Below, in pieces: positions 45,847-60,147 of a DNA stretch of 64,000 nucleotides. The notes under the pieces were generated by a model that had not been told where the DNA came from, did no database searches, and saw only the letters and a program-made list of their open reading frames with translations. A program made the translations under genes and the position numbers. How positions within the stretch are numbered: the stretch's first letter is position 1; every line of letters begins with the position of its first letter. The stretch is taken from positions 62,001-126,000 of IMG/VR virus record IMGVR_UViG_3300044712_001937; one strand, given 5' to 3'.

Positions 45847-45931
45847 TGGAAAATGGTGTAATGGCTAAACATCCCACTCTTACAAAGTGGAGACGAGAAG
45901 TATAATCCGAGTTCGAATCTCGGTTTTCCAA
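45847..45931 (+). tRNA. tRNA with Val(UAC) anticodon and long variable region
   Basis: TGGAAAA/TTTTCCA; CCACT-CTTACAA-AGTGG; 16-nt variable region. Confidence 0.8.
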
Positions 45932-45939
45932 CATAAAAT

Positions 45940-46020
45940 GTCCTCTTGGTGGAACGGTAGACACGATAGTTTTAGAAACTATTGCTGAAAGGTGTGAGAG
46001 TTCAAGTCTCTCAGAGGATA
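45940..46020 (+). tRNA. tRNA-Leu(UAG)
   Basis: GTCCTCT/AGAGGAT; ATAGT-TTTAGAA-ACTAT; class II arm. Confidence 0.88.
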
Positions 46021-46066
46021 CTAATATTTTATAATAATTAAAATAAACTTAATTCTTGCAAAAACA

Positions 46067-46732: not shown

Positions 46733-46820
46733 AAGACTTAATTTATAATAAATACTATAAATTTTCATTTTCGATATAGTTTTTCGGGACAAAGTAAAAG
46801 AATTAATTAATAATATATAT

Positions 46821-46907
46821 GGCTTTGTGGCGAAATTGGCAGTACGCAACAGACTTAAAATCTGTGGTTCAGTAATGGACGTGTCGGTTCAAGTCCGACC
46901 AGAGCTA
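46821..46907 (+). tRNA. tRNA-Leu(UAA)
   Basis: GGCTTTG/CAGAGCT; ACAGA-CTTAAAA-TCTGT. Confidence 0.9.
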
Positions 46908-46975
46908 CGCTATTGAGTTTTACACTTTTAGATTTCCGTGAAGTTAGTTAATAACTGAGAAAGAAAAAGTGATAT

Positions 46976-47051
46976 GGGGTATGGGACTGCTAGGGTTGGT
47001 CATCTCGCTTGCACCGAGAAAATCAGGACGATTCGAATTCGTCATGCTCCA
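46976..47051 (+). tRNA. tRNA-Ala(UGC)
   Basis: GGGGTAT/ATGCTCC with G3:U70; TCTCG-CTTGCAC-CGAGA. Confidence 0.88.
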
Positions 47052-47112
47052 CTGAGACAGACTGTTAGAATTTTATAGAACCTGTTGCTGGGTAGCGTAA
47101 AAATTCGAATAT

Positions 47113-47187
47113 GGTTCTGTAGCCCAATTGGTAGAGGCATCAGATTTAAATTCTGTATAGGTGTGGGTTCGACTCCCACCATCCCTA
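47113..47187 (+). pseudogene. tRNA-like gene, nominal Leu(UAA), mismatched acceptor stem
   Basis: Good D and T arms, CAGA-TTTAAAT-TCTG; GGTTCTG does not pair well with CATCCCT. Confidence 0.55.
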
Positions 47188-47194
47188 CTAACAT

Positions 47195-47265
47195 ACATCT
47201 GTCGTCTAATGGTAAGATATCGGTTTCCAACTCCGAGGATAAGGTTTCGATTACTTTCAGGTGTG
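47195..47265 (+). tRNA. tRNA-Trp(CCA)
   Basis: ACATCTG/CAGGTGT, G discriminator; loop TTCCAAC. Confidence 0.75.
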
Positions 47266-47283
47266 CTAATTAATTATAAATAT

Positions 47284-47550
47284 ATGAGTAGTGAAGATGG
47301 TAGGTATCATATAACTGATATCAAAACAGGTAGAAAATTTTTAGTTGAACCAATTGGTAATCCCCATGTTAATTGGGGTGATGTAAACCCTGCAACAAAA
47401 AAATTAGAAGGGGATTATGGTGATAAATATCGAGGTTCAATCGATGAAAAAAATTCAATAATTACTGAACAAAATGGATTTAAAAATATTATTGTAGGAG
47501 AAATTGGTGAATCTCCAGTAGATTTGATGAATAAAATTTTAAATTCTTAA
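47284..47550 (+). CDS. Conserved phage hypothetical protein (start revised to MSSEDG)
   Basis: The upstream part of the track ORF overlaps tRNAs; ATG at 47284. Confidence 0.65.
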   Translation: MSSEDGRYHITDIKTGRKFLVEPIGNPHVNWGDVNPATKKLEGDYGDKYRGSIDEKNSIITEQNGFKNIIVGEIGESPVDLMNKILNS

Positions 47551-47652
47551 ATTGCCGAATATTACCGGATATTGCCGGAATAAAATAAATTAATACTGAA
47601 TATCAAGTATTTATATTTTTATTTTATTACCGGATATTACCGGAATAAAATA
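47551..47652. repeat. Five 10-bp ATTRCCG(G/A)A(T/A) repeats in two blocks
   Basis: Units at 47551, 47561, 47571, 47626, 47636; each block ends TAAAATA. Confidence 0.8.
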
Positions 47653-47730
47653 TTGCTTATTTTGGGTTGACGATAGTAAGTTCCAAACATTTAGGAATGA
47701 TATGAGGGTTCATTCATAAGCGCATCTAAT

Positions 47731-47813
47731 ACGTCCGTGACCGAGTGGTTAAAGGTGATAGTCTCCAAAACTATTTGCGAAAGCATACGTGGGTTCAAAT
47801 CCTACCGGGCGTG
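47731..47813 (+). tRNA. tRNA with Trp(CCA) anticodon and long variable arm
   Basis: ACGTCCG/CGGGCGT; ATAGT-CTCCAAA-ACTAT; arm TGC-GAAA-GCA. Confidence 0.85.
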
Positions 47814-47875
47814 CTTTAATTTATTAAAAATCAATAACTTATGAAAACGCAAAAAGCAATGAGCACCCTATTAGG

Positions 47876-48335
47876 GTGCAATTAACAAGACAAGAACGAA
47901 GAAGAAATAAACATAGTGATGAATTTAATTTAATTTTCAAAATTTTTTTTTCAATCATATCGTTATAAAATACTTGATTTTTCAGGTGTTGACATTAAAA
48001 CTTTATTATCTTTAAATCATGAAGATTCTAAAGTTTGTTTTAAAAAATTTGATAATGGAGAATATTCGAAGGATGAAATATATTTTCAAGGTATTCCAAC
48101 CAGACATCCAAATATTCTTAAATCAATAATTATATCAAAAAAATCTTGGGGTTTACATGTTAAAATGTGGAGTGATGGTATTTATGAAGGTTGTTTCACT
48201 AAAAAAGAAATTTTAGAACAATTTTATGATAAAAATATTATTATACCTAATAGTTTTTTATTAGATTTAGATAATCAAATTATAAAAAAATTTAAGAATT
48301 ATGGCATCACAAAACAAATTAAAAAAGATGATTAA
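47876..48335 (+). pseudogene. Hypothetical ORF broken at a T9 homopolymer
   Basis: GTG-QLTRQERRR frame joins the QSYRYKILDFSG...KKDD frame if one T is removed at 47943-47951. Confidence 0.45.
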
Positions 48336-48486
48336 TAGTTATTGTTGGAGTAGTTTAAAAAATACTGTACAAGAAATGAAATTAAAACGTGTACTTTTTT
48401 ATACTGCAAATGATAGAAAAATGAATAAAAAGGTAGATTGTAACAACATTGATTAAAATTCGTATTTATAAACAAAACTTATATTT

Positions 48487-48921
48487 ATGAAAAAAACTAT
48501 TTTAAGTATTATTTTATCGTTAATATCTATTCTTGGATATACACAAGAAGTATCAGGTCAATTTACTAAATTGAATGAATCGTATTATCAAAATAATTTC
48601 GCAAATCAGATTAAAGGAAAAACTGAAGTTATTTTAGATGATAAAGCTCGTGTAGATATTGTTACGGATACTTTTGCAATTGAAGTTGATTTTGCTGAAA
48701 AATGGGCAGAATCTATAGGACAATCTCAATATTATGCGAGAAAATTAAATAAAAAAGCTGGTATATTATTAGTTATAAATCCTGCAACTGATGATAAATA
48801 TTTAAAACGTCTAATCATTACTACAATTTATGAAAATGTAACTGTTTGGTTATGGGATTATACAACAGATAAATGGTGTAAAGTTCAAACTAAAATTGAA
48901 TATTCATATAAATTTCAATAA
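48487..48921 (+). CDS. Signal-peptide-bearing PD-(D/E)XK-like protein
   Basis: Signal peptide; ARVDIVTDTFAIEVDFAEKWAESIGQSQYY. Confidence 0.6.
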   Translation: MKKTILSIILSLISILGYTQEVSGQFTKLNESYYQNNFANQIKGKTEVILDDKARVDIVTDTFAIEVDFAEKWAESIGQSQYYARKLNKKAGILLVINPATDDKYLKRLIITTIYENVTVWLWDYTTDKWCKVQTKIEYSYKFQ

Positions 48922-48959
48922 TTCTTGATAATTTCAATTTTAAAATATAAATTTGCCTA

Positions 48960-49697
48960 ATGTTAATATTGACAAGAAAAAAAGATTATTATGATGGTGT
49001 TGCTGGTTCAACTGGCATTGATAAAACCATTGTATATGAACGAGAAGAAAAGGAACTTACAAATAAAGAAGTTCCAATGTTTTTCGTACATGGAAGTCAT
49101 TCTTGGCAAAAAAATAGAGATTCTGCTTTTATTAATTTCAGATATCATAATTTAAAAAAAGAATTTCAGAAAAAATATCCATTAATGAATTATTTTATTA
49201 TTGGATTTTGTGGGAAACTTTATGTGGGTTGGAAACTTTACTATGAAATTCCACAAGGTTTCTCAATTCCTAATAAATTAATTACTGAAATTACATTTGA
49301 TGAAAGTTATATTACATCAATGATTGACGATAAAAGCGGATGGCGTGGTAAGTTTTCAGATAATTTAAATGAGATTAAAAATTACGATGCTTTAGATATA
49401 TTTAGAAAATATCACACTCCAATATTTGTATTTGATTCGGATTACGATGTTACATACATTTCAAATAATGGAAAATATAGAAACATGAATTCCAAATTCT
49501 TCATAAATCCAACTCTAAATAAATATGAATTTTATAAAATATTTGATTCATTTCAAGCATTTCAAGAAATTCAAATGTTTATGAGTGGTGTGTTAGGTTC
49601 TAATGAAAAAAATATTGTTGAAGTTGAAGATAAATACAAGATTACACAATATGGATTTGATAAATGGAGCTTTAGAAAAGAACCAAGTAAAAAATAA
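48960..49697 (+). CDS. Conserved phage hypothetical protein
   Basis: KKDYYD...FYKIFDSFQAFQEIQMFMSGVL...KITQYGFDKWSFRK; TAAATTTG promoter element upstream. Confidence 0.65.
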   Translation: MLILTRKKDYYDGVAGSTGIDKTIVYEREEKELTNKEVPMFFVHGSHSWQKNRDSAFINFRYHNLKKEFQKKYPLMNYFIIGFCGKLYVGWKLYYEIPQGFSIPNKLITEITFDESYITSMIDDKSGWRGKFSDNLNEIKNYDALDIFRKYHTPIFVFDSDYDVTYISNNGKYRNMNSKFFINPTLNKYEFYKIFDSFQAFQEIQMFMSGVLGSNEKNIVEVEDKYKITQYGFDKWSFRKEPSKK

Positions 49698-49700
49698 ATA

Positions 49701-49976
49701 ATGAATATGGAAGTTAAAAAAATATTAATAATACCTGCCAGATTTGTTGAAAAAACTGAAGAAGGTAAATATATTATTGATGTTTTATTACAAAATAAGC
49801 ATAAATCTATAACTGAAAGGAGATTGTTTGATGAATATTCTCTTAAAGGTATTGATAATCCTAATTTATTATTTATTGGTATTTTAACTGGAGTTGGTGT
49901 TATGCAATGTAATTTCATGGATGCTAATGACTATGAAGATTTATTTAAGAAAAAATGGAATGTATTATTAAAATAA
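49701..49976 (+). CDS. Hypothetical protein
   Basis: 91-aa ORF. Confidence 0.55.
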   Translation: MNMEVKKILIIPARFVEKTEEGKYIIDVLLQNKHKSITERRLFDEYSLKGIDNPNLLFIGILTGVGVMQCNFMDANDYEDLFKKKWNVLLK

Positions 49977-49991
49977 GTTCTTTAACATAAT

Positions 49992-50350
49992 GGGGGTGAC
50001 TGGCTTTGATTTCAGGTAGGGCGGTAACGTAAGCAAGTAGTAGTTGAATCGGACTACTCTAAAAAGGTTCAAAACAATAAATGCAGAAGACATTATGTCT
50101 ATTCCAACTTCCTTGACAAAAGGAAAAAGCGTATTCGCACAGAGTGCTGAACTTGCAATAGCAGCTTAAGGAAACAATAAACGGCAAAAGCATGTAAACA
50201 TGTGAGGTTTGAGATACCTTTAAATAATCACTCTGGTTTTTTTGTTTTCCATAATAACTTAATATTTTGTTGATTTAGAAAAATCAAATAAACTTGTAGA
50301 AAGCTTATTAAACACAGGAAAGACGAGGGGTTCGATACCCTCCACCTCCA
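49992..50350 (+). ncRNA. ssrA: tmRNA with tag (A)AEDIMSIPTSLTKGKSVFAQSAELAIAA
   Basis: 5' GGGGGTGACTGG pairs with 3' CACCTCCA; T-arm GGTTCGATACCC; internal ORF 50083-50169 ending LAIAA-stop. Confidence 0.93.
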
Positions 50351-50396
50351 CAAACTTTTTTCTATCTCCATAGTATTTATATGAAAATGTAATACT

Positions 50397-50951
50397 ATGG
50401 GAGATTGGAAAAAAAATAGGAAAACAGTAGCCACAATATGTAAAACGTGTAGTAAAACTTTTGAAAAAATAAAAACTGAATATAATAGAACAGAAAAATT
50501 AGGTAAAAATCATTATTGTAGTAGAAATTGTTGTGGAAAAGACAATATAAAAAAAACTATGGGTGAATGGTTTGGAAATGGTAATACATCTCATTTAAAA
50601 AATATTATAAGAAGTGATGAATTTACTGGATTTAGAGAATTTCTTAGGAGAGCAAGAAATAGAGATAAATTAGGTGATTTAACTTTAGAAGATATTAAAG
50701 AAACGTGGAATAATCAAAATGGTATTTGTCCATATACTGGAATTAAATTAACATTACCTACATATAGTAGAAATAAAAAAAATGTTTTTCAAGAATTAGC
50801 ATCATTGGATAGAATTGATTCTAACAAACCTTATGAAAAAGGAAATATTGTGTTTGTATGTGCATCAATTAATTTAATGAAAAATTCAATGACTGAAGAA
50901 GAAACTATTGCATTTTGTAAAAAAATTGCTTTATTTTGGTATAATAAATAA
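50397..50951 (+). CDS. HNH-like homing endonuclease immediately after tmRNA
   Basis: CPYTG...LASLDRIDSNKPYEKGNIVFVCASINLMK; late motif 50373-50381. Confidence 0.75.
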   Translation: MGDWKKNRKTVATICKTCSKTFEKIKTEYNRTEKLGKNHYCSRNCCGKDNIKKTMGEWFGNGNTSHLKNIIRSDEFTGFREFLRRARNRDKLGDLTLEDIKETWNNQNGICPYTGIKLTLPTYSRNKKNVFQELASLDRIDSNKPYEKGNIVFVCASINLMKNSMTEEETIAFCKKIALFWYNK

Positions 50952-51399
50952 TCAATCGATTATGGATATTGAAAAATTTAAAAAACATTTGGATGAATGG
51001 ATTGAATCTCCAAGTGGTAAAGCTTATATTGAAAAAGAACGAAAGGAATATGAACTAAAAATTCAAAGATATAATAGTTTTACTGATTGGCTTAAAACAA
51101 ATAGTTTTGATAATTTATTGTATCGTTTAATTATTAAACACGATGAAGAATATAGAGCTAAATGTTATGAAAATGGTTATGAACCATATCCAAATCATGT
51201 TTTACAATTTATTATTGATTATGCTTTTACTTTCGGCAAAAAAGTGAATAAAAAAATCATTAAAAAAAATAAACTCGATTCAGATTTTCCATATGATATT
51301 ACAGAATTTGAAGGTTTTTATTTTCAAATTATATATGGACAGGGTAGTATTGTTAGAATTTATAATCGAGATGATACAAGATTATTGTTGCAAATATAA
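50908..51399 (+). CDS. Hypothetical protein
   Basis: ORF in operon; probable start MDIEKF. Confidence 0.55.
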   Translation: MHFVKKLLYFGIINNQSIMDIEKFKKHLDEWIESPSGKAYIEKERKEYELKIQRYNSFTDWLKTNSFDNLLYRLIIKHDEEYRAKCYENGYEPYPNHVLQFIIDYAFTFGKKVNKKIIKKNKLDSDFPYDITEFEGFYFQIIYGQGSIVRIYNRDDTRLLLQI

Positions 51400-51635
51400 T
51401 GTCAAATAAAAAAAGAAATAAAGCTATTCGTGCAAAATACGAATTAGAAAAAGAAAAAAAAGAACATCCTGACTGGTGTTATTGTGATGAACCAGATTAT
51501 GATTTTAATTCTCCAATTGGAAAAACTGAACCAATTGATGGTTTTCCGTATTGGAATTCTGAAAATTATACTCAGGATATTTTTTTATGTAAAAAGTGTT
51601 TAAAAAAACATGTAATAAAAATAGTATTTGCATAA
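51399..51635 (+). CDS. Small Cys-containing protein
   Basis: CYC and CKKC motifs. Confidence 0.5.
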   Translation: MSNKKRNKAIRAKYELEKEKKEHPDWCYCDEPDYDFNSPIGKTEPIDGFPYWNSENYTQDIFLCKKCLKKHVIKIVFA

Positions 51636-51638
51636 TTT

Positions 51639-51724
51639 GGCGAAGTGATGGAACTGGTAGACATGCAGGACTTAAAATCCTGTGGTCAGTAATGACCGTG
51701 TGGGTTCGACTCCCATCTTCGCTA
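51639..51724 (+). tRNA. tRNA-Leu(UAA)
   Basis: GGCGAAG/CTTCGCT; CAGGA-CTTAAAA-TCCTG. Confidence 0.92.
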
Positions 51725-52021
51725 CAAATAAAATTTTAATAGTATTTATGAAAAATAAATTATCTGAACCACCAAAACCTCCTTTATGTAGGATAATAAG
51801 AGAAGGATGTACTCATTTTTGTAATAAATGTCATTCATCGACACCAAGAAGATGGGTTTTGATTGGTAAAAGATATTGTTTAAATCCTGATTGTCAAAAT
51901 TCATATGGCTATAAAGAAAAAGAGTAATAATGATTGTGGATGTGGTAAACCAGTTAAAGTTACTGACTCAAGTAATAAAAAAAGTAATTTTAAAAAAATT
52001 ATACCAAAAAAATGAAAAAAT

Positions 52022-52102
52022 GTTCTCGTGATGGAATGGTAGACTTGGCAGTTTCAAAAATTGTTGCTGAAAAGCGTGTGGGTTCGAGTCCCACCGGGAA
52101 TA
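52022..52102 (+). tRNA. tRNA-Leu(CAA)
   Basis: GTTCTCG/CGGGAAT; loop TTCAAAA; class II arm. Confidence 0.82.
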
Positions 52103-52185
52103 CAAAAATAAAATTTATTATTCTCAGTAAAGAAGAAGTTGAGAATGATAGAAGTAAAGCTTATAAATATTTAATTTAAATTTTT

Positions 52186-52428
52186 ATGAAAATTCACTAT
52201 AATCCATACGTTAATAATGATGAAGAAGATTATCCTGAATTTGCTTTATGTGGAACATTAATGCCTCAAGATGGTGGAAATGAAACTAATGATGAAAAAT
52301 TTGTGACATGTAAAAAATGTTTAAAATCAATAAAAAAAATTAATAATTGGAGAGATGAAACTGAAAAATATATATTAAATGATATGCAAGGTTTCGTTGA
52401 TTTTCAAAATAAAAATAATTTAATATGA
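52186..52428 (+). CDS. Small zinc-binding protein
   Basis: ALCG...VTCKKC. Confidence 0.55.
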   Translation: MKIHYNPYVNNDEEDYPEFALCGTLMPQDGGNETNDEKFVTCKKCLKSIKKINNWRDETEKYILNDMQGFVDFQNKNNLI

Positions 52429-52477
52429 AAAAAATCTTTGAATTCTTGTAGGTACGCTCTAATGCGACCACAAGAAT

Positions 52478-52780
52478 ATGGGTGGATTAAAAGAAATTGT
52501 AAAATCAACCACAAATCGTGGTGAGTTCAATCGTGCATATAAAATGCATTTAGAACATTCCGGAAAAATTCATTGTTCCAGATGTGGTTATCATCGTGGT
52601 GAAAACGAAGATAATAATTATTATGGAGGTTATAAAAAAACTAATGGTCATTGGAGTATAACATACCCAAATTGGAAATTAGTATCTAAACAACCAAAAC
52701 AATGGATGAAAAAACCAATCAATATTGTGTATGAAACAAGACACAATCGTGAATATGTTGAGATTAAATTCTCAACATAA
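52478..52780 (+). CDS. Hypothetical protein
   Basis: 100-aa ORF with CSRC motif. Confidence 0.55.
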   Translation: MGGLKEIVKSTTNRGEFNRAYKMHLEHSGKIHCSRCGYHRGENEDNNYYGGYKKTNGHWSITYPNWKLVSKQPKQWMKKPINIVYETRHNREYVEIKFST

Positions 52781-52784
52781 ACAT

Positions 52785-52855
52785 TGCGATATCGTCTAAT
52801 GGTAGGACACCTCTCTCATAAGGAGTGAATTGCAGTTCGATTCTGCATATCGCAA
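52785..52855 (+). tRNA. tRNA-Met/Ile2(CAU)
   Basis: TGCGATA/TATCGCA; loop CTCATAA. Confidence 0.82.
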
Positions 52856-52879
52856 CAACATTCCAGCATGTTAAAACAA

Positions 52880-52905
52880 AAAAACCCGGATGATACCGGG
52901 TTTTT
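52880..52905. terminator. Bidirectional terminator
   Basis: AAAAACCCGG-ATGATA-CCGGGTTTTT. Confidence 0.85.
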
Positions 52906-53338
52906 AAAATTTAACGTTACATGTTTTTTCTTTAAAATCGAATTCTAATTCGGAGATATATAACGAACTACCTTTAACTAATGTTGGATTAGCAAGTATA
53001 AATTTCCATTCAAAATCATTTATATTTTTTTGTATATTTTCTTGTACAATTTCATCAGTTTGTTTATCTGTATAATTAACATAAAAAATTCCTTCAACTT
53101 TTTCAACATCAACAATAAAATTTTCAATACCCATTTGGTTAAGCCAAAAGCTTACTTTCCAAGTAACATTAATATCACTACCTACAATATCTGAATCATA
53201 TTGAGAAGAGAAACTACTAAAGCCATAAAAATATGAATTTTGTAATTTTTCTGTAAATGTGAATCTATCATCAGTTAAGGCATAACTTTCATTTAGATAA
53301 TTTTGAATTTCTTCTTTAATAATATGTTGTAAACTCAT
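52904..53338 (-). CDS. Putative internal head protein (IIKEE...LNE leader)
   Basis: MSLQHIIKEEIQNYLNES; late motif 53355-53363. Confidence 0.55.
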   Translation of the reverse strand: MSLQHIIKEEIQNYLNESYALTDDRFTFTEKLQNSYFYGFSSFSSQYDSDIVGSDINVTWKVSFWLNQMGIENFIVDVEKVEGIFYVNYTDKQTDEIVQENIQKNINDFEWKFILANPTLVKGSSLYISELEFDFKEKTCNVKF

Positions 53339-53414
53339 TATATTAATTTTTAAATATAAATACTTTGATTATTATTAAAATTAATTTAATATATTTGTCG
53401 ATATTAATAACATT

Positions 53415-53714
53415 ATGACAAAATTTGCGTATAAGTTATTCAGGAAGAAAAAATGTGGTGATATTACGTCATTATTTATCAATAATACAAGAGTCTTACC
53501 ATTAAATACTTGGATTGAAGCTAAAGGATACCCAACGCCCGGTTTTAAATTTAGACCATTTTGGCATTGTACAGAGCAACCAATTGCACCACATTTAAGT
53601 ATGAAAGGTAGAGTTTGGTTAAAAGTAGAAATGGAAGATTTTGAAGAATTAATAAGACCTGAAAATCAAGGTGGAAAATGGTTTTTAGCTAAAAAAATAA
53701 AAATACTAATATGA
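53415..53714 (+). CDS. Hypothetical protein
   Basis: 99-aa ORF after a TATATTTG promoter element at 53390-53397. Confidence 0.6.
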   Translation: MTKFAYKLFRKKKCGDITSLFINNTRVLPLNTWIEAKGYPTPGFKFRPFWHCTEQPIAPHLSMKGRVWLKVEMEDFEELIRPENQGGKWFLAKKIKILI

Positions 53715-54730
53715 TTAAGAAAGAAGAAATTACAGTAAACAAGTCGCATTGGGAAAATATGAATAGTGATGAATTGGAAATATTTGCAAATAAAATATTT
53801 CAATACTATCGTGAAAATGGTTTTCCATATTTTCCTACTGACATTGAAAGTAGGATGAAAGATTTTAACACATTAAAGAAATTTGATTTTTCAAATATTA
53901 TTCAAGATGATGTTGTTAATCAAACAATGCATGGTTTAGGTCTGGCTTGGTCATATTTTCCACATGCTTTTGAAGTGAAATGTGGTAATAAAATGACTCC
54001 TTATGAAGCATTTATAGATGATGAAATATTTATGAGAGTAATACGGAGAAGATTAAAAATGGGTACATATATTAGTGATTCTGGAATTAGAAAAATGTTG
54101 AAATTATTTAGTAATGTTCAAAGTGTTTCCAATTTTAGACCTACTGCAGCAGCAGCTATATATAACACTTTTGCAAAAAACGGTGTGGTTTGGGATATGT
54201 CTGGTGGTTGGGGTGGTAGATTACTTGGTGCAATTGTAAGTAATGTTGGAAAATATATTGCAACTGAACCATCTACTAAAACATACGAAGGATTAAGAAA
54301 ATTAGGTGAAGATTTTGGAAAAGAAAATAAATGGGAAATATATCCTGTTGGTAGTGAAGATTTTTTACCAATTGCAAATTCTTTAGATTTGTGTTTTACA
54401 TCTCCACCATATTTTAACCAAGAAAAATATGCAGATGAGCCAACTCAAAGTTATATTAAATATCCTACTCGTGAAGAATGGATTGAAGGATTTTTAATTA
54501 AAACATTTGAGAATTGTCATTGGGGATTAAAGGATGATGGTTTGATGATTATTAATATTGCTGATGTAATAGGTAGAAATAGTATAAAATTAGAAGAAGA
54601 TACTATCAAATCTGCTGAAAAAGCAGGATTTAAATTAAGGAAAAAATTCTATCTTGCATTATCGAATGTTAATATGAGAAATAAAGAAAATAAACATAAA
54701 TTTGAACCGATGTTCTTATTTACTAAATAA
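53711..54730 (+). CDS. SAM-dependent DNA amino-methyltransferase-like protein
   Basis: WDMSGGWGGRLLGA (motif I) and FTSPPYF (motif IV). Confidence 0.82.
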   Translation: MIKKEEITVNKSHWENMNSDELEIFANKIFQYYRENGFPYFPTDIESRMKDFNTLKKFDFSNIIQDDVVNQTMHGLGLAWSYFPHAFEVKCGNKMTPYEAFIDDEIFMRVIRRRLKMGTYISDSGIRKMLKLFSNVQSVSNFRPTAAAAIYNTFAKNGVVWDMSGGWGGRLLGAIVSNVGKYIATEPSTKTYEGLRKLGEDFGKENKWEIYPVGSEDFLPIANSLDLCFTSPPYFNQEKYADEPTQSYIKYPTREEWIEGFLIKTFENCHWGLKDDGLMIINIADVIGRNSIKLEEDTIKSAEKAGFKLRKKFYLALSNVNMRNKENKHKFEPMFLFTK

Positions 54731-54788
54731 ATTATGAAAATTTTGGGGTAATTTTACATTACTTGGTATTTATAATAAAATATTGATT

Positions 54789-55559
54789 ATGAGTATTGGT
54801 ATATATAAAATTACAAATCCTAAAGGAAAAATTTATATTGGACAAAGTATAAATCTTGAAAAAAGAATTAATGATTATAAATATTTGAATTATTCAAAAA
54901 ATCAATATAAATTATATAATTCATTTCAAAAATATGGTATTGATTCACATATTTTTGAAATAATAGAAATTTGTGAAATTCATAATTTAAACAATAGAGA
55001 AAGATATTGGCAGGATTTTTATGATGTTTTACATAATGGTCTTAATTTAATATTAACGACCAATGATAATTGTTTACCAATTGTTTCTAAAGAAACTAAA
55101 GAAAAAATAAAAAAAAGTCTTAATAATTATTTTATTAAATTAGGTACTTTAAAAAGAAATGAAATTTATGGAAAAAGCAGTCGTAAACGAAAAGGATGTA
55201 TAGGATTAAAAGGACGTGTTATTTCTGATGAAACTAAAAGAAAAATAAGTATTGCAAAAAAAGGACATATAGTTTCTGACGATACTAAACTAAAAATTAA
55301 AAACAAAATGATTGGTAGAGAAATTTCATGGAGTAAAAAAATTGGTGATAGTAATCGTGGAAAAAGTAAAAATAAAGGAAAACACTGTAAACCAATAATT
55401 CAATTAAATAAAAATGGAGAAATTTTAAATAAATGGAAAAGTATTTCTCAAGCATCAATTGAAACAAAAATTCCATTTAATTCAATATCTAATTGTTTAA
55501 CTGGTTATTGTAAAACATCAAGAGGTTTTATTTGGAAATATGATAATAATATAGAATAA
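54789..55559 (+). CDS. GIY-YIG homing endonuclease with NUMOD repeats
   Basis: MSIGIYKITNPKGKIYIGQS; NUMOD3-like SDETKRKIS; GFIWKY; late motif 54766-54774. Confidence 0.9.
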   Translation: MSIGIYKITNPKGKIYIGQSINLEKRINDYKYLNYSKNQYKLYNSFQKYGIDSHIFEIIEICEIHNLNNRERYWQDFYDVLHNGLNLILTTNDNCLPIVSKETKEKIKKSLNNYFIKLGTLKRNEIYGKSSRKRKGCIGLKGRVISDETKRKISIAKKGHIVSDDTKLKIKNKMIGREISWSKKIGDSNRGKSKNKGKHCKPIIQLNKNGEILNKWKSISQASIETKIPFNSISNCLTGYCKTSRGFIWKYDNNIE

Positions 55560-56608
55560 TGAATAAAGAATTAAATATATTGCATGAACAAGGTTTATTG
55601 CAAAAACAAGTTCATCCTAATTATAAATTAATTATTTGGAATTATACTCCAAAAGTTAGTTATGAAAAATTATGGAAAACTAATGATTTATTATTAAAAT
55701 GTCGAGGTTTAGTGACTGATTTTCAAGGAAATATAATTGCTAATTGTATTCCTAAATTCTTTAACTATGAAGAATTAAATTATAATGATATTCCTAACGA
55801 ACCTTTTGAATTTACAGATAAAATGGATGGTTCTTATATTAATTTTTTTAATTATAATGGTAATTGGATTTTTTCCTCACGAGGTTCATTTTCATCAGAA
55901 CAAGCTATATTAGCTAATAAAATATTTAATGAAAAATATTTTAATAAAGTAATATTAAATCCAGAATATAATTATATTATGGAATTAATAGGAATTGATA
56001 ACAGAATTGTTATTTATTACCCTAATAATGATTTAGTTTTATTAACTTGTTTTTCAAAAGAAAATAAAGAAATTAATATATATTCTGAAGAATTTAATGG
56101 GTTTAATAAGGTTAAAAAATATGATGGAATAATTGATTATAAAAAAATAAAAGCATTAATTTCTGACGATACTGAAGGATATGTTATTCGTTTTAAAAAT
56201 GGATTTAGAATGAAAATTAAAGGAGATGAATATTGTAGATTACATTCGATAATAACTAATGTTTCGAATATTGTAATTTGGAAACATATGAAAGATGGTT
56301 TACCTTTTGAAGAATTGCTTGATAGAGTTCCGGATGAATTTTATAATTGGGTACTTAAAACTAAAAATGAATTAGAAGATAATTATTATGCCATTGAATG
56401 TCCATTATTAAAAGAATTTGTAGAAATATATTATTTTAATGGTAGTTATAATCGCACAAAATTTGCTAAAGCAGTTTTAGAATCTAAATCTAAACATAAA
56501 TCTATATTATTCTCCTTATTTGATAATAAAAAATATAATCAAGTAATTTGGAAAGCAATTAGACCTACATTTAGTAAGCCATTTCGAGATGGTTATGATA
56601 CGGATTAA
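55559..56608 (+). CDS. T4 Rnl1-family RNA ligase
   Basis: CRGLV...IPKFFNY, KMDGS (motif I), ELIG, EGYVIRF, MKIKGDEY. Confidence 0.85.
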   Translation: MNKELNILHEQGLLQKQVHPNYKLIIWNYTPKVSYEKLWKTNDLLLKCRGLVTDFQGNIIANCIPKFFNYEELNYNDIPNEPFEFTDKMDGSYINFFNYNGNWIFSSRGSFSSEQAILANKIFNEKYFNKVILNPEYNYIMELIGIDNRIVIYYPNNDLVLLTCFSKENKEINIYSEEFNGFNKVKKYDGIIDYKKIKALISDDTEGYVIRFKNGFRMKIKGDEYCRLHSIITNVSNIVIWKHMKDGLPFEELLDRVPDEFYNWVLKTKNELEDNYYAIECPLLKEFVEIYYFNGSYNRTKFAKAVLESKSKHKSILFSLFDNKKYNQVIWKAIRPTFSKPFRDGYDTD

Positions 56609-56613
56609 TTGAT

Positions 56614-56642
56614 AAAAGCGAAGGTTTCTTCGCTTTTTTTTT
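56614..56642 (+). terminator. Intrinsic terminator
   Basis: AAAAGCGAAG-GTTT-CTTCGC-T run. Confidence 0.85.
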
Positions 56643-56667
56643 GTATTTATAATAAAACAATATAGAT

Positions 56668-57474
56668 ATGAAAATAATTAAATTTTTGAAGAAAATTTTT
56701 CCGTTCTTCTTTAAGAAGAAAAAAATAATTAATGTAAAATTTGGATGGAAAAAAGATGATTATGACCCAAGAGATTTTAAATTTAAAATTACAACTCCCC
56801 ATGAATTACCTCCAATGGTTGACCTTAGAAACTTATGTCCACCAGTGTATAATCAAGGAAGTGTTGGAAGTTGTACAGCTAATGCACTTGGTGCTGCATT
56901 TCAATTCGAACAAATAAAACAAAAAAAAGAAGATTTTATTCCTTCAAGATTATTCATTTATTATAATGAAAGAGCTATGGAAGGTACTATTAATGAAGAT
57001 GCTGGTGCAATGATTCGTGATGGTATTAAAACAATGGTTAAAGATGGTGTATGTCCTGAAACTATGTGGGAATACATTGAAAATAGATTTAGAACTAAAC
57101 CAAGTGATAATTGTTATAAAGCTGCACTTGATAATCAAGTATTAGAATATTTAAGAATATCACCGTCTTTATATGAAATTAAACATTGTTTAAATGAAGG
57201 TTACCCAATATCTTTCGGATTTTTAATATATCCTTCTTTTATGGATGGTGATGTTGCTCGTACTGGTATAGCTAATATGCCAAAAAATAATGAGAATTAT
57301 ATTGGTGGTCATGCAGTATTAGCTGTCGGATATGATGATAGTAAAGAAGCATTAATTGTTAGGAATAGCTGGGGTGAAAATTGGGGAATTAATGGATATT
57401 TTTATTTACCTTATGGTTATATTACAACTCCCGAATTATCAAATGATTTCTGGACAATTAGATTGGTGGAATAA
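56668..57474 (+). CDS. Papain-like (C1) cysteine peptidase
   Basis: NQGSVGSCTANA, GGHAVLAVGYDD, VRNSWG; late motif 56643-56651. Confidence 0.92.
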   Translation: MKIIKFLKKIFPFFFKKKKIINVKFGWKKDDYDPRDFKFKITTPHELPPMVDLRNLCPPVYNQGSVGSCTANALGAAFQFEQIKQKKEDFIPSRLFIYYNERAMEGTINEDAGAMIRDGIKTMVKDGVCPETMWEYIENRFRTKPSDNCYKAALDNQVLEYLRISPSLYEIKHCLNEGYPISFGFLIYPSFMDGDVARTGIANMPKNNENYIGGHAVLAVGYDDSKEALIVRNSWGENWGINGYFYLPYGYITTPELSNDFWTIRLVE

Positions 57475-57490
57475 AATAAATTAAAAATAT

Positions 57491-57533
57491 TGTAACTTTT
57501 TTTTGGAAGTCTCGTATTTATATCATATATTTG
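57491..57533 (+). promoter_or_regulatory. Overlapping ECF-type and sigma-A promoters of tRNA cluster 3
   Basis: TGTAAC 57491-57496 + N16 + CGTA 57513-57516; TTTG 57502-57505 + TATATTTG 57526-57533. Confidence 0.75.
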
Positions 57534-57619
57534 CAGAGTGAATTTAATGAATTCTGTATTTGACTGTTTTGAATGGCGAGGGTCATTAAATTTAATAACA
57601 AAATAAACAATATAAAGAA

Positions 57620-57709
57620 ATGAGAACATTTGGTACATATTATTACGGTAAAAAATCCTATAAACACCTTATAGGATTCGGGAATTCTATGTCCAAAATG
57701 CAAAGATAA
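57620..57709 (+). CDS. Attenuator leader peptide 3, MRTFGTYYYGKKSYKHLIGFGNSMSKMQR (Tyr/Lys-rich)
   Basis: Manual translation; contains GGATTCGGG complementary to the terminator 5' arm and an 8-bp protector hairpin. Confidence 0.8.
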   Translation: MRTFGTYYYGKKSYKHLIGFGNSMSKMQR

Positions 57710-57736
57710 CAGCAATGATTTTTGCGTAATGAACTG

Positions 57737-57766
57737 AAACCCGAATTCGAAAGATTCGGGTTTTTT
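57737..57766 (+). terminator. Conditional terminator of attenuator 3
   Basis: AAACCCGAAT-TCGAAAG-ATTCGGG-T6. Confidence 0.88.
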
Positions 57767-57780
57767 GTTTTTATATAAAT

Positions 57781-57863
57781 TGTGTAGATGGTAAATTGGC
57801 TAAATCAGAGGCTTGTAACACCTTCGTCATTCGACTATGTAGGTTCGATTCCTACCTGCACAA
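57781..57863 (+). tRNA. tRNA-Tyr(GUA)
   Basis: TGTGTAG/CTGCACA; loop TTGTAAC; class II arm. Confidence 0.8.
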
Positions 57864-57870
57864 CAAATTT

Positions 57871-57943
57871 GACTTCGTGGCGCAATTGGTAGCGCAATAG
57901 GCTTTTAACCTATGGGTTGGGGATTCGACTTCCCCCGGAGTCA
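57871..57943 (+). tRNA. tRNA-Lys(UUU)
   Basis: GACTTCG/CGGAGTC; ATAGG-CTTTTAA-CCTAT. Confidence 0.88.
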
Positions 57944-58003
57944 CGGTAGGAAGACTGTTATAATTTCATAGTTCCAAGTAATGGAAAGCATAGAAATTAA
58001 ATT

Positions 58004-58087
58004 GGGAGTGCGCTAACGCTGGAGAGTTAGGTTTGTCTGTAAAACAAATGTCTTTCGGCTGAGTGGGTTCGAATCCCACTACTCCCA
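58004..58087 (+). tRNA. tRNA-Tyr(GUA)
   Basis: GGGAGTG/TACTCCC; TTTGT-CTGTAAA-ACAAA. Confidence 0.88.
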
Positions 58088-58153
58088 CAAATTTAATATT
58101 AAAATAGGTGTATTATACCTATGTTTAATAGTATTTATATTAAATTTAATATT

Positions 58154-58549
58154 ATGTTTGAAAATTGTAAAAATTCAAAAAAACAAGGTGATTTAGGATT
58201 AGGAAAAGCAATTGGATGGTTAACAGAATGTGGTTATACTGTTTCTATACCATTAACTGATTCACAAGATTATGATTTGATTGTTGATATGGATAATAAA
58301 TTAAATAAAGTTCAAGTTAAAACAACCAGATATAAAAATAAAAATGGAATTTTTTGTGTTAATTTATCAGTTAAAGGAGGCAATCAAAGTAGTAATACAA
58401 TAAAAAAATTTGATGCTAATTTTACTGATTATGTTTATGTTTATACATCGAATAATGAAATGTATTTTATTCCGTCATGTGAAATAAAAACAAAAAATAA
58501 TTTAAATATTGGTAAATTATTTTCAAAATATAAAATAATGACTTCGTAA
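58154..58549 (+). CDS. PD-(D/E)XK homing-endonuclease-like protein within tRNA cluster 3 (start revised)
   Basis: KKQGDLG...PLTDSQDYDLIVD...KVQVKT; GTATTTATA at 58131-58139. Confidence 0.82.
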   Translation: MFENCKNSKKQGDLGLGKAIGWLTECGYTVSIPLTDSQDYDLIVDMDNKLNKVQVKTTRYKNKNGIFCVNLSVKGGNQSSNTIKKFDANFTDYVYVYTSNNEMYFIPSCEIKTKNNLNIGKLFSKYKIMTS

Positions 58550-58612
58550 CTTAATTGGTAGAGTACCACTCTCTTAAAGTGGGAGTTGTGGGTTCAAATC
58601 CCACCGAAGTCA
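58540..58612 (+). tRNA. tRNA-Lys(CUU)
   Basis: GACTTCG/CGAAGTC; CCACT-CTCTTAA-AGTGG. Confidence 0.9.
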
Positions 58613-58696
58613 CTAACTGAACTTAGCAAATGGAGTTCTGTCAACCATCAAGCATGATTAAATCGTAGGAGGGGGAGAGTTTAAAATTTGCAATAT

Positions 58697-58783
58697 GACC
58701 TTGTAGCTCAACTGGATAGAGCTTCTGGCTTTTAACCAGAAGGGAGCGTAATGCCGTTGTGGGTTCGAGTCCCACCGGGGTCA
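58697..58783 (+). tRNA. tRNA with Lys(UUU) anticodon and long variable arm
   Basis: GACCTTG/CGGGGTC; TCTGG-CTTTTAA-CCAGA; 18-nt variable region. Confidence 0.85.
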
Positions 58784-58790
58784 CAAAATT

Positions 58791-58942
58791 GGATTGTCTT
58801 TCGGTGTGGTGAACCGAGCCGTCCCGATAAGGACGGTGCTCAAAAGGATATGGTTAATAAAGAAGATTTCTCGCCTATGTATGATAGATGCGCATAATAA
58901 CATAGGATGGTGCTTCGCTTGGTTCGAATCCCCTACAGTCCA
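58791..58942 (+). ncRNA. tRNA-Ile-like RNA with about 75-nt insertion in the variable region
   Basis: Acceptor GGATTGT/ACAGTCC, D arm, CGTCC-CGATAA-GGACG, TTCGAAT loop. Confidence 0.55.
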
Positions 58943-58957
58943 CTAATATTTATTTTT

Positions 58958-59194
58958 ATGGAAACAATTAAAGAAATCGTAAAGGGGACTATGGCAAAAT
59001 TAAGCCATATATGCAATTCTAAAGCATATTTTATTATTGACACTGAATACCATCAATATCAATTAGAAATTGATTGTAGTGACAAAGAATGGGAAAATAC
59101 GTATATTTATCCGGAATATAAAAGCATTACTTTAATGCGATGGATAAAAAAAGGTATAGATAAGAATGATGATTCATTTATAATGCTGAAATAA
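58958..59194 (+). CDS. Hypothetical protein (start revised to METIKE)
   Basis: The upstream part of the track ORF overlaps the tRNA-like element. Confidence 0.6.
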   Translation: METIKEIVKGTMAKLSHICNSKAYFIIDTEYHQYQLEIDCSDKEWENTYIYPEYKSITLMRWIKKGIDKNDDSFIMLK

Positions 59195-59319
59195 AATTCA
59201 GCATTTTTTTTGTTAAAATTTTTAAAATTTATTTAGTCTAATTAAAAATAACCTTGCATTTTTCGTATATAATATTTAAATTTGAGAAAAAATAACTTTA
59301 AGCTTAATTAATATGAAAA

Positions 59320-60147
59320 ATGGCTAAAAATGAAAAGAAAAAAGTAACTACAACTACAGTTACAACAACTGTTACAGAAGAAATTCTAACTACTCCTACA
59401 AACGAAAAAACTCACATTATTTGTATTCTTGACCGTTCAGGTTCTATGCATTCTATTATTAATGACTCAATTGGTGGGTTTAATACTTTTTTAAAGAAAC
59501 AAAAAGACCTTCCTGATGAAGCTACAATTACAGTTGTAATATTTGATGACCAATATGAATTAATTTATGATAATATTGATATTAAAAGTGCAGAATTATT
59601 GACTGATAAAATTTGGTCTCCACGTGGCAATACTGCGTTATATGACGCAATTGGAAAAACCATTACAACTGAAAAAGCTAAGTTCAGTAAACTTGGAAAA
59701 GATGCTCCTGCTAAAGTTTTAGTTTGTCTTGTAACTGATGGACAAGAAAATTCAAGTCATGAATATAAATCTGATGCAATCAAAAAAATGATTAAATCAT
59801 GTGAAGACGAAAATTGGAATTTTATTTATTTAGCAGCTAATCAAGACGCATTTGCAGTTGGAAGTAGTTTTGGTATGAGTGTTGGAAATACTTATAATTA
59901 TACAGCTTCAAGTCGTGGTGTTGCAGATATGTCAAATGTTATGTTTAGTGCAACTGCTTCTTATCGTGGTATGGATTCTAAATCTGCAAGTTTTAAAAAA
60001 ATGTCTAAATCATTAGTTGATTTAGATGAAAACGATGATGCTATTAATTTAACTAATAATGGTACTTCGGGTACGTTAAATATTAATGGTAATAATATTA
60101 CAACCAGTACAACATATGTTACTGATACTACAATTCCAAAGAAATAA
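59320..60147 (+). CDS. vWA (MIDAS) domain protein
   Basis: ILDRSGSM, RGNTALYDAIG, VTDGQENSS. Confidence 0.9.
   Translation: MAKNEKKKVTTTTVTTTVTEEILTTPTNEKTHIICILDRSGSMHSIINDSIGGFNTFLKKQKDLPDEATITVVIFDDQYELIYDNIDIKSAELLTDKIWSPRGNTALYDAIGKTITTEKAKFSKLGKDAPAKVLVCLVTDGQENSSHEYKSDAIKKMIKSCEDENWNFIYLAANQDAFAVGSSFGMSVGNTYNYTASSRGVADMSNVMFSATASYRGMDSKSASFKKMSKSLVDLDENDDAINLTNNGTSGTLNINGNNITTSTTYVTDTTIPKK

Follow-up and report, generated by a model that had tools for sequence, protein, structure and literature searches.

The locus lies in a 64,000-nt stretch of DNA (hereafter the window), which is part of the 365-kb genome of an uncultured tailed jumbo phage with a G+C content of 26.8%. Positions 57502-57772 comprise, in this order, a host-type promoter, a 29-codon open reading frame (ORF), a hairpin between regions 1 and 2 (1:2), an antiterminator (2:3) and an intrinsic terminator (3:4) (Table 1). 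The cargo that follows consists of five tRNA genes, in the order Tyr-Lys-Tyr-Lys-Lys, and an endonuclease-type ORF, with no genes for biosynthesis or aminoacyl-tRNA synthetases. Both Tyr genes score below the Rfam tRNA threshold. All features that an initial annotation had reported were found where it had placed them, which confirms its observation: the tRNA order (as called by ARAGORN), the run YYYGKKSYK at residues 7-15 of the ORF, in which seven of nine residues are Tyr or Lys, and the antiterminator pairing all held, while the protector hairpin, described as 8 bp long, is present with a real length of 10 bp.

Table 1 Features of the Tyr/Lys unit and of its two sibling attenuators in the window.
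Feature	Coordinates	Strand	Details
Sibling attenuator 1	41144-41347	+	Promoter 41144-41174; leader 41207-41281; terminator 41314-41347
Sibling attenuator 2	44086-44318	+	Promoter 44086-44116; leader 44160-44252; terminator 44282-44318
Bacteroidota-type promoter	57502-57533	+	-33 TTTG 57502-57505; 20-nt spacer; -7 TATATTTG 57526-57533
Leader ORF	57620-57709	+	29 codons, TAA stop; ORF call, conserved in relatives
Regulatory codons	57638-57646 (Tyr); 57650-57655 (Lys); 57659-57661 (Tyr); 57662-57664 (Lys)	+	
Region 1, 5' arm of protector hairpin	57654-57663	+	Inside codons 12-15
Region 2	57669-57682	+	57669-57678 pairs with region 1; 57674-57682 pairs with region 3 (antiterminator)
Region 3, 5' arm of terminator, common to antiterminator	57740-57748	+	
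Region 4 and T-tract	57753-57772	+	GATTCGGG 57753-57760; T-tract 57761-57772
Regulated tRNA array	57781-58784	+	ARAGORN
tRNA-Tyr (first)	57781-57864	+	ARAGORN
tRNA-Lys(ttt)	57871-57944	+	ARAGORN
tRNA-Tyr (second)	58004-58088	+	ARAGORN
PD-(D/E)XK endonuclease-type ORF	58121-58549	+	Inserted in the array
tRNA-Lys(ctt)	58540-58613	+	ARAGORN
tRNA-Lys(ttt) (last)	58697-58784	+	ARAGORN
Probable end of transcription unit	59182-59205	+	Next strong terminator on this strand

The promoter is a dedicated one, situated between a peptidase gene (56668-57474) and the leader, and transcription is inferred to start near 57540. The pattern TTTG-N18-21-TAnnTTTG has seven matches in the window, three of which lie just upstream of its three leaders, and the motif is found upstream of 28 of the 34 attenuators of the family compared with 2.7% of background windows. 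The promoters of this phage resemble those of Bacteroidota, and we infer that its host probably belongs to this group. The peptidase gene has no other terminator before 57736. The terminator hairpin ends 17 nt ahead of the first tRNA, a gap that measures 1-45 nt in most relatives; because a mere 9 nt separate the T-tract from the first tRNA-Tyr, there is no room for a promoter of the tRNA's own and read-through is the only route to expression of the array.

The start of the leader ORF is conserved in related phages, its length ranges from 25 to 31 codons, and the indels in its sensing part are all of 3 nt. Its upstream context is A-rich and devoid of a Shine-Dalgarno motif, as in the other genes of the phage. 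Taken alone, the Tyr/Lys enrichment of this leader is modest given the AT-rich genome (8 of 28 residues versus 3.9 expected, P=0.034). Among the 293 small ORFs of the genome, 15 reach its Tyr/Lys fraction and just 2 reach seven Tyr/Lys in a nine-residue window. The best such window holds 5-7 Tyr/Lys in every relative, and a count of 6 is reached by at most 1.4% of control ORFs. Codon-position entropy in the leader alignment shows no third-position excess (0.37, 0.52 and 0.53), and 75 synonymous substitutions stand against 255 non-synonymous ones. Both results fit selection on composition and not on peptide sequence, and neither provides evidence for coding. The leader is translatable; that it is translated is inferred from sequence alone.

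The core of the protector hairpin pairs AATCCTAT (57654-57661) with ATAGGATT (57671-57678), and its extension (57654-57663 with 57669-57678) gives 10 perfect pairs around a 5-nt loop. The antiterminator pairs GGATTCGGG (57674-57682) with CCCGAATTC (57740-57748) through 9 bp, including one G.U, and a terminator scan identified the intrinsic terminator at 57736-57764, with 12 pairs, together with its T-tract. The computed duplex energies are -15.7 kcal/mol for 3:4, -14.6 kcal/mol for 2:3 and -11.0 kcal/mol for 1:2. The region folds better than 200 of 200 shuffles (z=-5.6), and the 2:3 complementarity exceeds that of 299 of 300 shuffles (z=-3.8) and of all 293 genomic control windows. The segment 58786-58946 does not fold better than its shuffles.

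Comparison with relatives supports these helices to different degrees. Across 15 relatives, pairing in helix 1:2 is complete (100%), with one compensatory change from G:C to A:U. In helix 2:3, the window displays an A:T to T:A flip relative to its relatives, with both strands changed. Among close relatives of the Tyr/Lys type this helix hardly varies otherwise and offers no covariation signal. In their MAFFT alignment, the row of the window is shifted by one column and the true flip appears as unpaired cells; the 2:3 pair count on this alignment was dropped on account of this shift and of the near-invariance of the helix. In one divergent relative (L065), the terminator is a different one and is matched by region 2; in another (L071), the region 2 match is no better than chance. 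In the type represented by sibling attenuator 1, the 2:3 helix shows two pairs with compensatory changes, and none of 500 shuffles attains its score.

In order to follow the effect of ribosome position, we used a co-transcriptional model in which the RNA is cut at region 3 and the ribosome footprint is held unpaired. Without a ribosome, 1:2 forms and 2:3 has no pairs. With the A site at any of codons Y8-Y14, 2:3 is complete (9/9 pairs); it falls to 3 pairs at H16 and to none from L17 to the stop codon. The model thus predicts that the antiterminator is freed only by a ribosome stalled at the Tyr/Lys run. A boundary directly after the cognate run is likewise found in 34 family members, and in all three attenuator types the sensing part is enriched in cognate codons (Fisher tests 2e-6, 2e-7 and 2e-11, uncorrected for relatedness). 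An equilibrium fold of the full leader with the footprint was discarded, as it yields the terminator in all states and cannot separate them. Since the terminator wins at equilibrium in every modelled state, the switch would have to be kinetic, like that of classical attenuators, an inference drawn from equilibrium folds without a kinetic model. In about half of the relatives, the minimum-energy fold of the ribosome-free truncated RNA already favours 2:3, so that the default state may differ among members.

All three attenuator types are met again in related phages, across dozens of contigs. An RNA-motif search that required regions 2, 3 and 4 only, with neither an ORF nor tRNAs asked for, returned 30 loci, each with a Tyr/Lys-rich ORF and, wherever enough downstream sequence was available, followed by Lys/Tyr tRNAs. 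The 25 distinct relatives obtained in this way all keep the ORF, the Tyr/Lys run and the 1:2, 2:3 and 3:4 pairings. The order of the cognate residues varies between lineages, their composition being constant. A candidate fourth leader, in contig L004 (10108-10179), was rejected, its supposed terminator falling within a tRNA-Ser.

The two sibling units of the window display the same correspondence between leader and cargo. Sibling attenuator 1, the leader core of which reads HIHPQPQQHPQ, precedes an inserted HNH ORF and then Pro/His/Gln tRNAs (42111-42737), and His, Pro and Gln account for 10 of its 23 leader residues (P=3e-6). Sibling attenuator 2 precedes Asp/Glu/Val/Leu/Ala/Trp tRNAs, and these amino acids make up 20 of 29 residues (P=3e-5). 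Each of the three leaders is depleted in the residue sets of the other two. Together with the relatives, these two units constitute the strongest support beyond chance. The match extends to individual codons: in all six distinct Pro/His/Gln arrays that contain a tRNA-Arg(acg), the leader core has a CGC or CGT codon, and Arg outside the core is encoded by AGA, AGG or CGG (mostly AGA/AGG, CGG twice). No core Arg is present in 13 arrays without tRNA-Arg; the exceptions are two leaders with a core Arg codon for which no tRNA-Arg was detected. Arrays with a tRNA-Leu(taa) likewise have extra TTA codons in their leaders. What the sequences document directly is the presence of the elements and how they are conserved, the compensatory changes, and the agreement of leader codons with downstream tRNAs. 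We further infer that every tRNA group of this phage, and not Lys/Tyr alone, is under such control.

The same island encodes an Rnl1-type RNA ligase, a cyclic-phosphate-processing protein and a tmRNA. No further tRNAs occur within 6 kb beyond the window, and Pfam gave nothing for ten small neighbouring ORFs. Protein queries from 38207-40084 and 59320-60144 matched solely the window's own contig, a DNA search of cultured phages revealed similarity at the tRNA level only, and no tRNAs lie close to the nearest public relative of an island protein (LR756500, 35% identity).

We propose that this element is probably a ribosome-mediated (leader-peptide) transcription attenuator that tunes the Tyr/Lys tRNA array to how much charged tRNA-Tyr and tRNA-Lys is available. 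The initial annotation had proposed this arrangement of 1:2, 2:3 and 3:4 alternatives, a reading now supported by related phages and by the presence of all structural hallmarks of such an attenuator, without experimental proof. In this mechanism, host RNA polymerase would initiate at the Bacteroidota-type promoter and transcribe the leader. When Tyr- and Lys-tRNAs are ample, the ribosome would pass the YYYGKKSYK run and hairpin 1:2 would re-form behind it, leaving region 3 free to form the terminator, and transcription would stop 9 nt before the first tRNA. When either tRNA is scarce, the ribosome would stall on the Tyr/Lys codons and cover region 1; region 2 would then pair with region 3, the terminator would be blocked and the polymerase would read into the array. 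Lastly, RNase P would excise the tRNAs from the read-through transcript. The net effect would be a negative feedback in which tRNAs are made on demand. Leader translation, termination, read-through and the physiological signal all remain inferred, in the absence of expression, termination or ribosome data. It counts against this reading that a stall caused by amino-acid starvation would not be relieved by extra tRNA.

A bolder reading, which we regard as no more than possible, is that these attenuators are immune sensors of tRNA depletion by PrrC, PARIS, PtuAB or Septu-like defences. Retron-Eco7 PtuAB degrades tRNA-Tyr and is countered by the tRNA-Tyr of T5 (PMC11555353), and PrrC and PARIS are countered by phage tRNA-Lys. 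The initial annotation was correct in naming tRNA-Lys as the PrrC target and, as the T5 work shows for the retron part, tRNA-Tyr as a target of retron-associated effectors; the link that it drew to these defences is plausible and remains speculative. Depletion of tRNA-Lys or tRNA-Tyr by an anticodon nuclease of the host, or by some other defence that degrades tRNA, would stall the leader ribosome and switch on replacement tRNAs, which would work alongside the RNA ligase, the cyclic-phosphate-processing protein and the tmRNA of the island. If true, the phage would possess an inducible counter-defence, with the damage being read directly from translation. tRNA-Lys and tRNA-Tyr are documented as defence targets in E. 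coli systems (PMC11555353), and it is only by analogy with these that the tRNA-Lys and tRNA-Tyr carried here may be suspected, speculatively, of a counter-defence role. If such control applies to every tRNA group that the phage carries, a rationale specific to defence, itself still speculative, is not needed.

Three other explanations deserve consideration. The terminator could be a plain constitutive one, belonging to the peptidase gene or to a small peptide gene, with leaky read-through into the tRNAs and with the ORF, the Tyr/Lys run and the 2:3 pairing arising by chance. Tyr and Lys codons are indeed common at this G+C content, other small ORFs equal the Tyr/Lys fraction of the leader (15/293), and no earlier terminator follows the peptidase gene. 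Such an accident is nevertheless very unlikely: the three features are retained together in 25 distinct relatives, a dedicated promoter separates the peptidase gene from the leader, the two sibling units of the window are matched to their respective arrays (P=3e-6 and 3e-5), Arg and Leu codons vary with the tRNAs that an array contains, and compensatory changes exist. Alternatively, the leader RNA could be a translation-independent riboregulator that binds uncharged tRNA, in a T-box-like manner, or a protein, the ORF being incidental. The terminator/antiterminator logic is common to T-box and protein-mediated attenuators, and codon-position entropy gives no clear coding signal. We hold this to be highly improbable as well, since Rfam gave no match to the T-box or to any other family even with the cut-off relaxed to E<=1, the leader is only ~120 nt long, and that of attenuator 2 would need to sense six tRNAs, which is impossible for a single specifier. 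The conserved start and length of the ORF and its 3-nt indels argue against it, as do the cognate residues, whose order changes from lineage to lineage while their composition does not, and the use of CGY specifically for core Arg, with AGA/AGG for the most part (CGG twice) elsewhere.

The remaining alternative accepts a leader-peptide attenuator and attributes it to another signal, namely host amino-acid starvation, nascent-peptide arrest, or a leader RNA or peptide acting in trans. A classical attenuator responds to the level of charged tRNA irrespective of what has altered it. Trans-acting attenuator RNAs and peptides are known, such as rnTrpL and peTrpL in Sinorhizobium (PMC7968998, PMC7298713), and the proline-rich core of sibling type 1 might stall ribosomes on its own. 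However, the leader codons are read by precisely those tRNAs whose genes are regulated, down to the correspondence of CGY with tRNA-Arg(acg), which is what feedback on tRNA supply predicts, and the C-terminal parts of the peptides are accounted for by the RNA pairing that they encode. We thus see very little room for this alternative and retain attenuation by tRNA supply.

Phage tRNA genes are usually viewed as constitutive helpers, serving codon usage or opposing tRNA-cleaving defences. If our proposal is true, their expression would follow demand through a feedback in which the ribosome serves as the sensor and its codons are matched to the anticodons under control. The reach of leader-peptide attenuation would then include non-coding cargo, viruses and expression signals of the Bacteroidota type. 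The family amounts to a natural experiment: it comprises three types of sensor and dozens of variants, and its leaders shift as arrays gain a tRNA. Why phages carry tRNAs, an old question, can thereby be tested directly. These attenuators might also be used as compact ~250-nt parts reporting the supply of chosen charged tRNAs.

No Rfam family matches the attenuator, at gathering score in the window or at E<=1 in 57480-59300; neither the T-box (RF00230, with its stem I specifier loop and, in the antiterminator, the conserved T-box sequence) in the window or in 57480-59300, nor amino-acid leaders such as His, Leu, Thr and Trp were found, and the literature searched contained no earlier report of an attenuator on phage tRNA genes. 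In its organization, the unit corresponds to the amino-acid operon attenuators of E. coli and Salmonella (trp, his, leu, thr, ilv, pheA), with the same promoter, short ORF and run of regulatory codons, the same 1:2, 2:3 and 3:4 alternatives, an intrinsic terminator, and the proposed read-out of charged tRNA through ribosome position; as in the thr and ilv leaders, one leader would sense several amino acids. It differs from them in being viral, in having tRNA genes rather than biosynthetic enzymes as cargo, in its TTTG/TAnnTTTG promoter, absence of a Shine-Dalgarno motif and probable Bacteroidota host, and in lacking sequence similarity to any Rfam leader family. Moreover, the stop codon of the phage leader lies 25 nt past region 2, so that termination would rely on 1:2 re-forming and not on a ribosome masking region 2.

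The E. coli pheST attenuator (pheM leader) controls, as is proposed for the phage unit, a translation component cognate to the sensed tRNA; its cargo is an aminoacyl-tRNA synthetase, a single amino acid is sensed, and the system is cellular. T-box riboswitches also choose between terminator and antiterminator according to the state of a specific tRNA and also control translation-related genes, but they need no ribosome, since a specifier codon and the T-box sequence bind the uncharged tRNA directly, whereas the phage leaders are too short for this and sense several amino acids. Lastly, the tRNA regions of phages that counter defences share with this locus clustered tRNA-Tyr and tRNA-Lys genes and nearby homing endonucleases (PMC11555353, PMC11464382, PMC13096335, PMC10264068). 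The tRNA-Tyr of T5 is expressed from a strong constitutive promoter (PMC11555353), whereas expression of the array described here would depend on ribosome stalling.

The initial annotation had read 57491-58783 as a Tyr/Lys leader controlling Tyr-Lys-Tyr-Lys-Lys tRNAs, in which a perfect 8-bp protector hairpin sequesters part of an antiterminator. All of the features it named are present in this unit (attenuator 3), where regions 1 to 4 form the hairpin 1:2, the antiterminator 2:3 and the terminator 3:4; the hairpin held, but is perfect over 10 bp (57654-57663 with 57669-57678). The observation is confirmed and its interpretation as an attenuator is supported in silico, making a leader-peptide attenuator of tRNA genes the likely reading. 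Tyr or Lys occupies 8 of 28 leader residues against 3.9 expected (P=0.034), a fraction reached by 15 of 293 small ORFs, and a window with 7 of 9 Tyr/Lys occurs in only 2 of these 293. In an AT-rich genome this enrichment is weak by itself. Stronger signals come from the RNA: none of 200 shuffles folds as well as the region (z=-5.6), and the complementarity between region 2 and the terminator 5' arm exceeds that of 299 of 300 shuffles and of all 293 genomic control windows.

The 5' untranslated region (57541-57619) exceeds that of the relatives by about 50 nt and holds a 19-codon ORF (57547-57606) containing GAATGG..GGG, like region 2 of the Pro/His/Gln type; it could be a recombination remnant. 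A hairpin is also predicted over the leader stop codon (57697-57726), between regions 2 and 3, and several relatives have it with altered pairs.

Features of the Tyr/Lys unit and of the tRNA island
Feature	Position	Remark
Leader ORF	57620-57709	YYYGKKSYK = residues 7-15
Antiterminator 2:3	57674-57682 and 57740-57748	GGATTCGGG complementary to CCCGAATTC
Terminator	57736-57764	T-tract attached
tRNA array	from 57781	tRNA-Tyr, then Lys, Tyr, Lys, Lys
Cyclic-phosphate-processing receiver-domain protein	42729-43064	in tRNA island
tmRNA	49992-50351	28-residue tag; in tRNA island
Rnl1-type RNA ligase	55559-56608	in tRNA island
HNH endonuclease-type ORF	41465-42103	within or beside tRNA arrays
GIY-YIG endonuclease-type ORF	54783-55559	within or beside tRNA arrays
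PD-(D/E)XK endonuclease-type ORF	58121-58549	within or beside tRNA arrays
Long-variable-region tRNAs (Gln, Glu, Val, Trp, Lys)	42574-42658, 44791-44875, 45847-45932, 47731-47814, 58697-58784	

At equilibrium the terminator always wins, which is what a kinetic switch would give; the RNA was therefore folded as present before region 4 is made, with the ribosome footprint kept unpaired. In this co-transcriptional model, the RNA without a ribosome forms 1:2 and no 2:3 pairs. Helix 2:3 is complete (9 of 9 pairs) when the A site lies at any of codons 8-14 (Y Y G K K S Y), and it falls to 6 pairs at codon 15, 3 at codon 16 and 0 from codon 17 through the stop. Since 2:3 is complete only with the A site around the Tyr/Lys run, the model predicts that stalling on this run would give read-through. 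The same boundary lies right behind the cognate run in 34 family members, and the sensing part of each of the three types is enriched in cognate codons, relatedness being uncorrected. The duplex energies are -11.0 (1:2), -14.6 (2:3) and -15.7 kcal/mol (3:4).

This layout recurs at 41144-41347 (attenuator 1) and 44086-44318 (attenuator 2). The leader core of the former, HIHPQPQQHPQ, precedes Pro, His, Pro, Pro, His, Gln and Gln tRNAs, the first tRNA-His being called only by Rfam and relaxed ARAGORN; the leader of the latter, with D, E, V, L, A or W at 20 of 29 residues, precedes Asp, Glu, Val, Leu, Ala and Trp tRNAs. Their enrichments relative to the phage's own proteome (P=3e-6 and P=3e-5, respectively) are matched by no other small ORF among 293, and each of the three leaders is depleted in the other two residue sets. 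In each unit the leader ORF contains, internally or at its 3' end, a copy of the terminator 3' arm that can pair with the terminator 5' arm. Three of the seven Bacteroidota-type promoter motifs in the window (TTTG, 18-21 nt, TAnnTTTG) lie directly upstream of the three leaders, and the motif is found <=160 nt upstream in 28 of 34 family units compared with 2.7% of background windows. A Shine-Dalgarno-like core is rare among the long ORFs (4 of 49), and the leaders resemble these ORFs in having A-rich start sites; this fits a Bacteroidota host, so that the missing Shine-Dalgarno motif is no argument against leader translation. Attenuator 2 also precedes the tmRNA and Leu/Met tRNAs, and 764 nt including the HNH ORF separate attenuator 1 from its first tRNA (1-28 nt in relatives).

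Two queries, the adjacent peptidase gene and a conserved protein of the island, retrieved relatives at 34 + 36 viral loci and 80 metagenomic loci. The family comprises phages of roughly 330-365 kb in which all three tRNA groups recur, each directly behind a terminator that itself follows a leader ORF of matching type. An IMG/VR motif search requiring only regions 2, 3 and 4 of the Tyr/Lys type returned 30 loci, each with a 26-31-codon ORF, and Lys/Tyr tRNAs lie past the terminator in every locus with enough downstream sequence. The best 9-residue window of the 25 distinct leaders holds 5-7 Tyr/Lys (median 7); a value of 6 is reached by no more than 1.4% of 715 control small ORFs. Tyr/Lys order varies by lineage (YYYGKKSYK, SYYGYKSYK, YYKQYYYK, KSYKKYKMKK) with composition retained, and the sensing part of the leader alignment contains four indels, each of 3 nt.

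Pairing of helix 1:2 is complete (100% of cells) in 15 sequences, three of which carry a G:C to A:U double change; its covariation score is reached by 4 of 500 shuffles. Helix 2:3 is almost invariant in close relatives of the Tyr/Lys type, and the window itself carries a compensatory flip, with ATTCGGG/CCCGAAT in place of the AATCGGG/CCCGATT of relatives; region 4 stays the same despite the flip, and the change in region 2 therefore serves 2:3 specifically. Two 2:3 pairs of the Pro/His/Gln type have changed in a compensatory way (A:U to G:C; U:A to C:G), a score reached by 0 of 500 shuffles, and region 3 often has a better Watson-Crick match in region 2 than in region 4. The divergent locus L065 has an unrelated terminator stem and a region 2 that matches it (z=-4.6); in L071, another divergent relative, and in the Asp/Glu unit of L065, regions 2 and 3 match only at chance level.

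An Arg codon is present in the leader core of all six distinct Pro/His/Gln arrays with tRNA-Arg(acg), always as CGC or CGT, the codons read by that anticodon; Arg outside the core (position 2 or tail) is encoded by AGA, AGG or CGG. Core Arg is absent from 13 arrays without tRNA-Arg, and two members have a CGC core codon with tRNA-Arg undetected, Rfam included. Counting these two as failures, we calculate a Fisher P of about 5e-4 (counts 6/0 and 2/13, relatedness uncorrected). Extra TTA codons appear in the core where Pro/His/Gln arrays hold tRNA-Leu(taa), and the array of the related locus L004 extends with Met, Cys, Asn, Ile, Ser, Phe, Gly and Thr behind the leader core TINKYFVSKSYK.

The tRNA groups (42111-58784 and relatives) sort by first codon base: group 1 reads CCN/CAN, plus CGN in some phages; group 2 GAN/GTN/GCN, plus Leu and Trp; and group 3 AAR/TAY, with further codons beginning with A or T in L004. 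In L002 (7496-7638), L049, L058 and L067 the first tRNA follows the Tyr/Lys attenuator only after a spacer of about 140 nt with 3-4 repeats of a TATGAAAAAYAGNTATAA-like motif, and the Lys/Tyr array of L047 ends with a second copy of the attenuator terminator sequence (19494-19520). The two most divergent relatives carry tRNAs with anticodon CTA, reading TAG (L065 9706, L071 14006), a hint that stop codons may be recoded in these phages.

A plain terminator accompanied by a chance ORF is very hard to reconcile with these data, as it leaves unexplained the dedicated promoter, the conservation in relatives, and the three-fold match of leader and array together with codon tracking. The data do not support a T-box-like or protein-mediated switch, which appears improbable: there is no Rfam family match even at E<=1, a single leader would need to respond to six tRNAs, and ORF start, frame and length are all conserved. 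That the attenuator reports amino-acid starvation, or that its RNA or peptide works in trans, is conceivable and not excluded; against both, feedback on tRNA supply predicts the exact correspondence seen between the codons sensed and the tRNAs regulated.

The window derives from the 364.7-kb contig IMGVR_UViG_3300044712_001937 of a tailed phage encoding a T4-like major head protein, portal and terminase; among cultured phages, the closest by head protein infects Flavobacterium (34% identity). The G+C of the window is 26.8%. Its 41-59 kb interval holds 25 tRNA genes (ARAGORN), 3 additional tRNA-like matches (Rfam) and the tmRNA, interspersed with an Rnl1-type RNA ligase, a cyclic-phosphate-processing domain protein and several homing-endonuclease-type ORFs. 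The receiver-domain protein, tmRNA and ligase in one island tentatively suggest a tRNA-repair/ribosome-rescue module. For Gln, Glu, Val, Trp and Lys, a tRNA gene of normal length is accompanied by a second one of 83-88 nt whose variable region is enlarged, a form that is uncommon for these classes. A tRNA-like gene flanked by the two tRNA-Asp genes (44487-44561; Rfam 41.5 bits) has no anticodon assignable by ARAGORN because its anticodon loop is abnormal, and is kept at the same place in L046, L050, L071 and L075. Immediately 3' of the last tRNA-Lys lies a 153-nt element (58791-58943) with an acceptor-like closing stem and a T-arm-like end, called by relaxed ARAGORN as tRNA-Ile(gat) with a 56-nt insert; no Rfam family matches this element, which folds no better than shuffles.

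The background statements of the initial annotation, that tRNA-Lys(UUU) is the PrrC target and tRNA-Tyr a reported target of retron-associated effectors, are correct (PMC11555353): retron-Eco7 PtuAB degrades tRNA-Tyr and phage tRNA-Lys counters PrrC (PMC11555353), and both tRNAs are also targets of PARIS and Septu. The attenuators might sense tRNA-targeting defence, a speculative reading made attractive by the adjoining RNA ligase and tmRNA; the data can be explained without it, since every tRNA group is under the same control.

The full-text literature searched contains no report that we could find of leader-peptide attenuation of tRNA genes, phage or cellular; an older report is not excluded, subscription journals being mostly outside the search. 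In its inferred mode of action the Tyr/Lys unit resembles the trp, his, thr, ilv and pheA attenuators, and it meets every testable structural criterion of their class. It differs from them in having tRNA genes as cargo, in being viral, in its Bacteroidota-type expression signals, and in a stop codon placed well past region 2.
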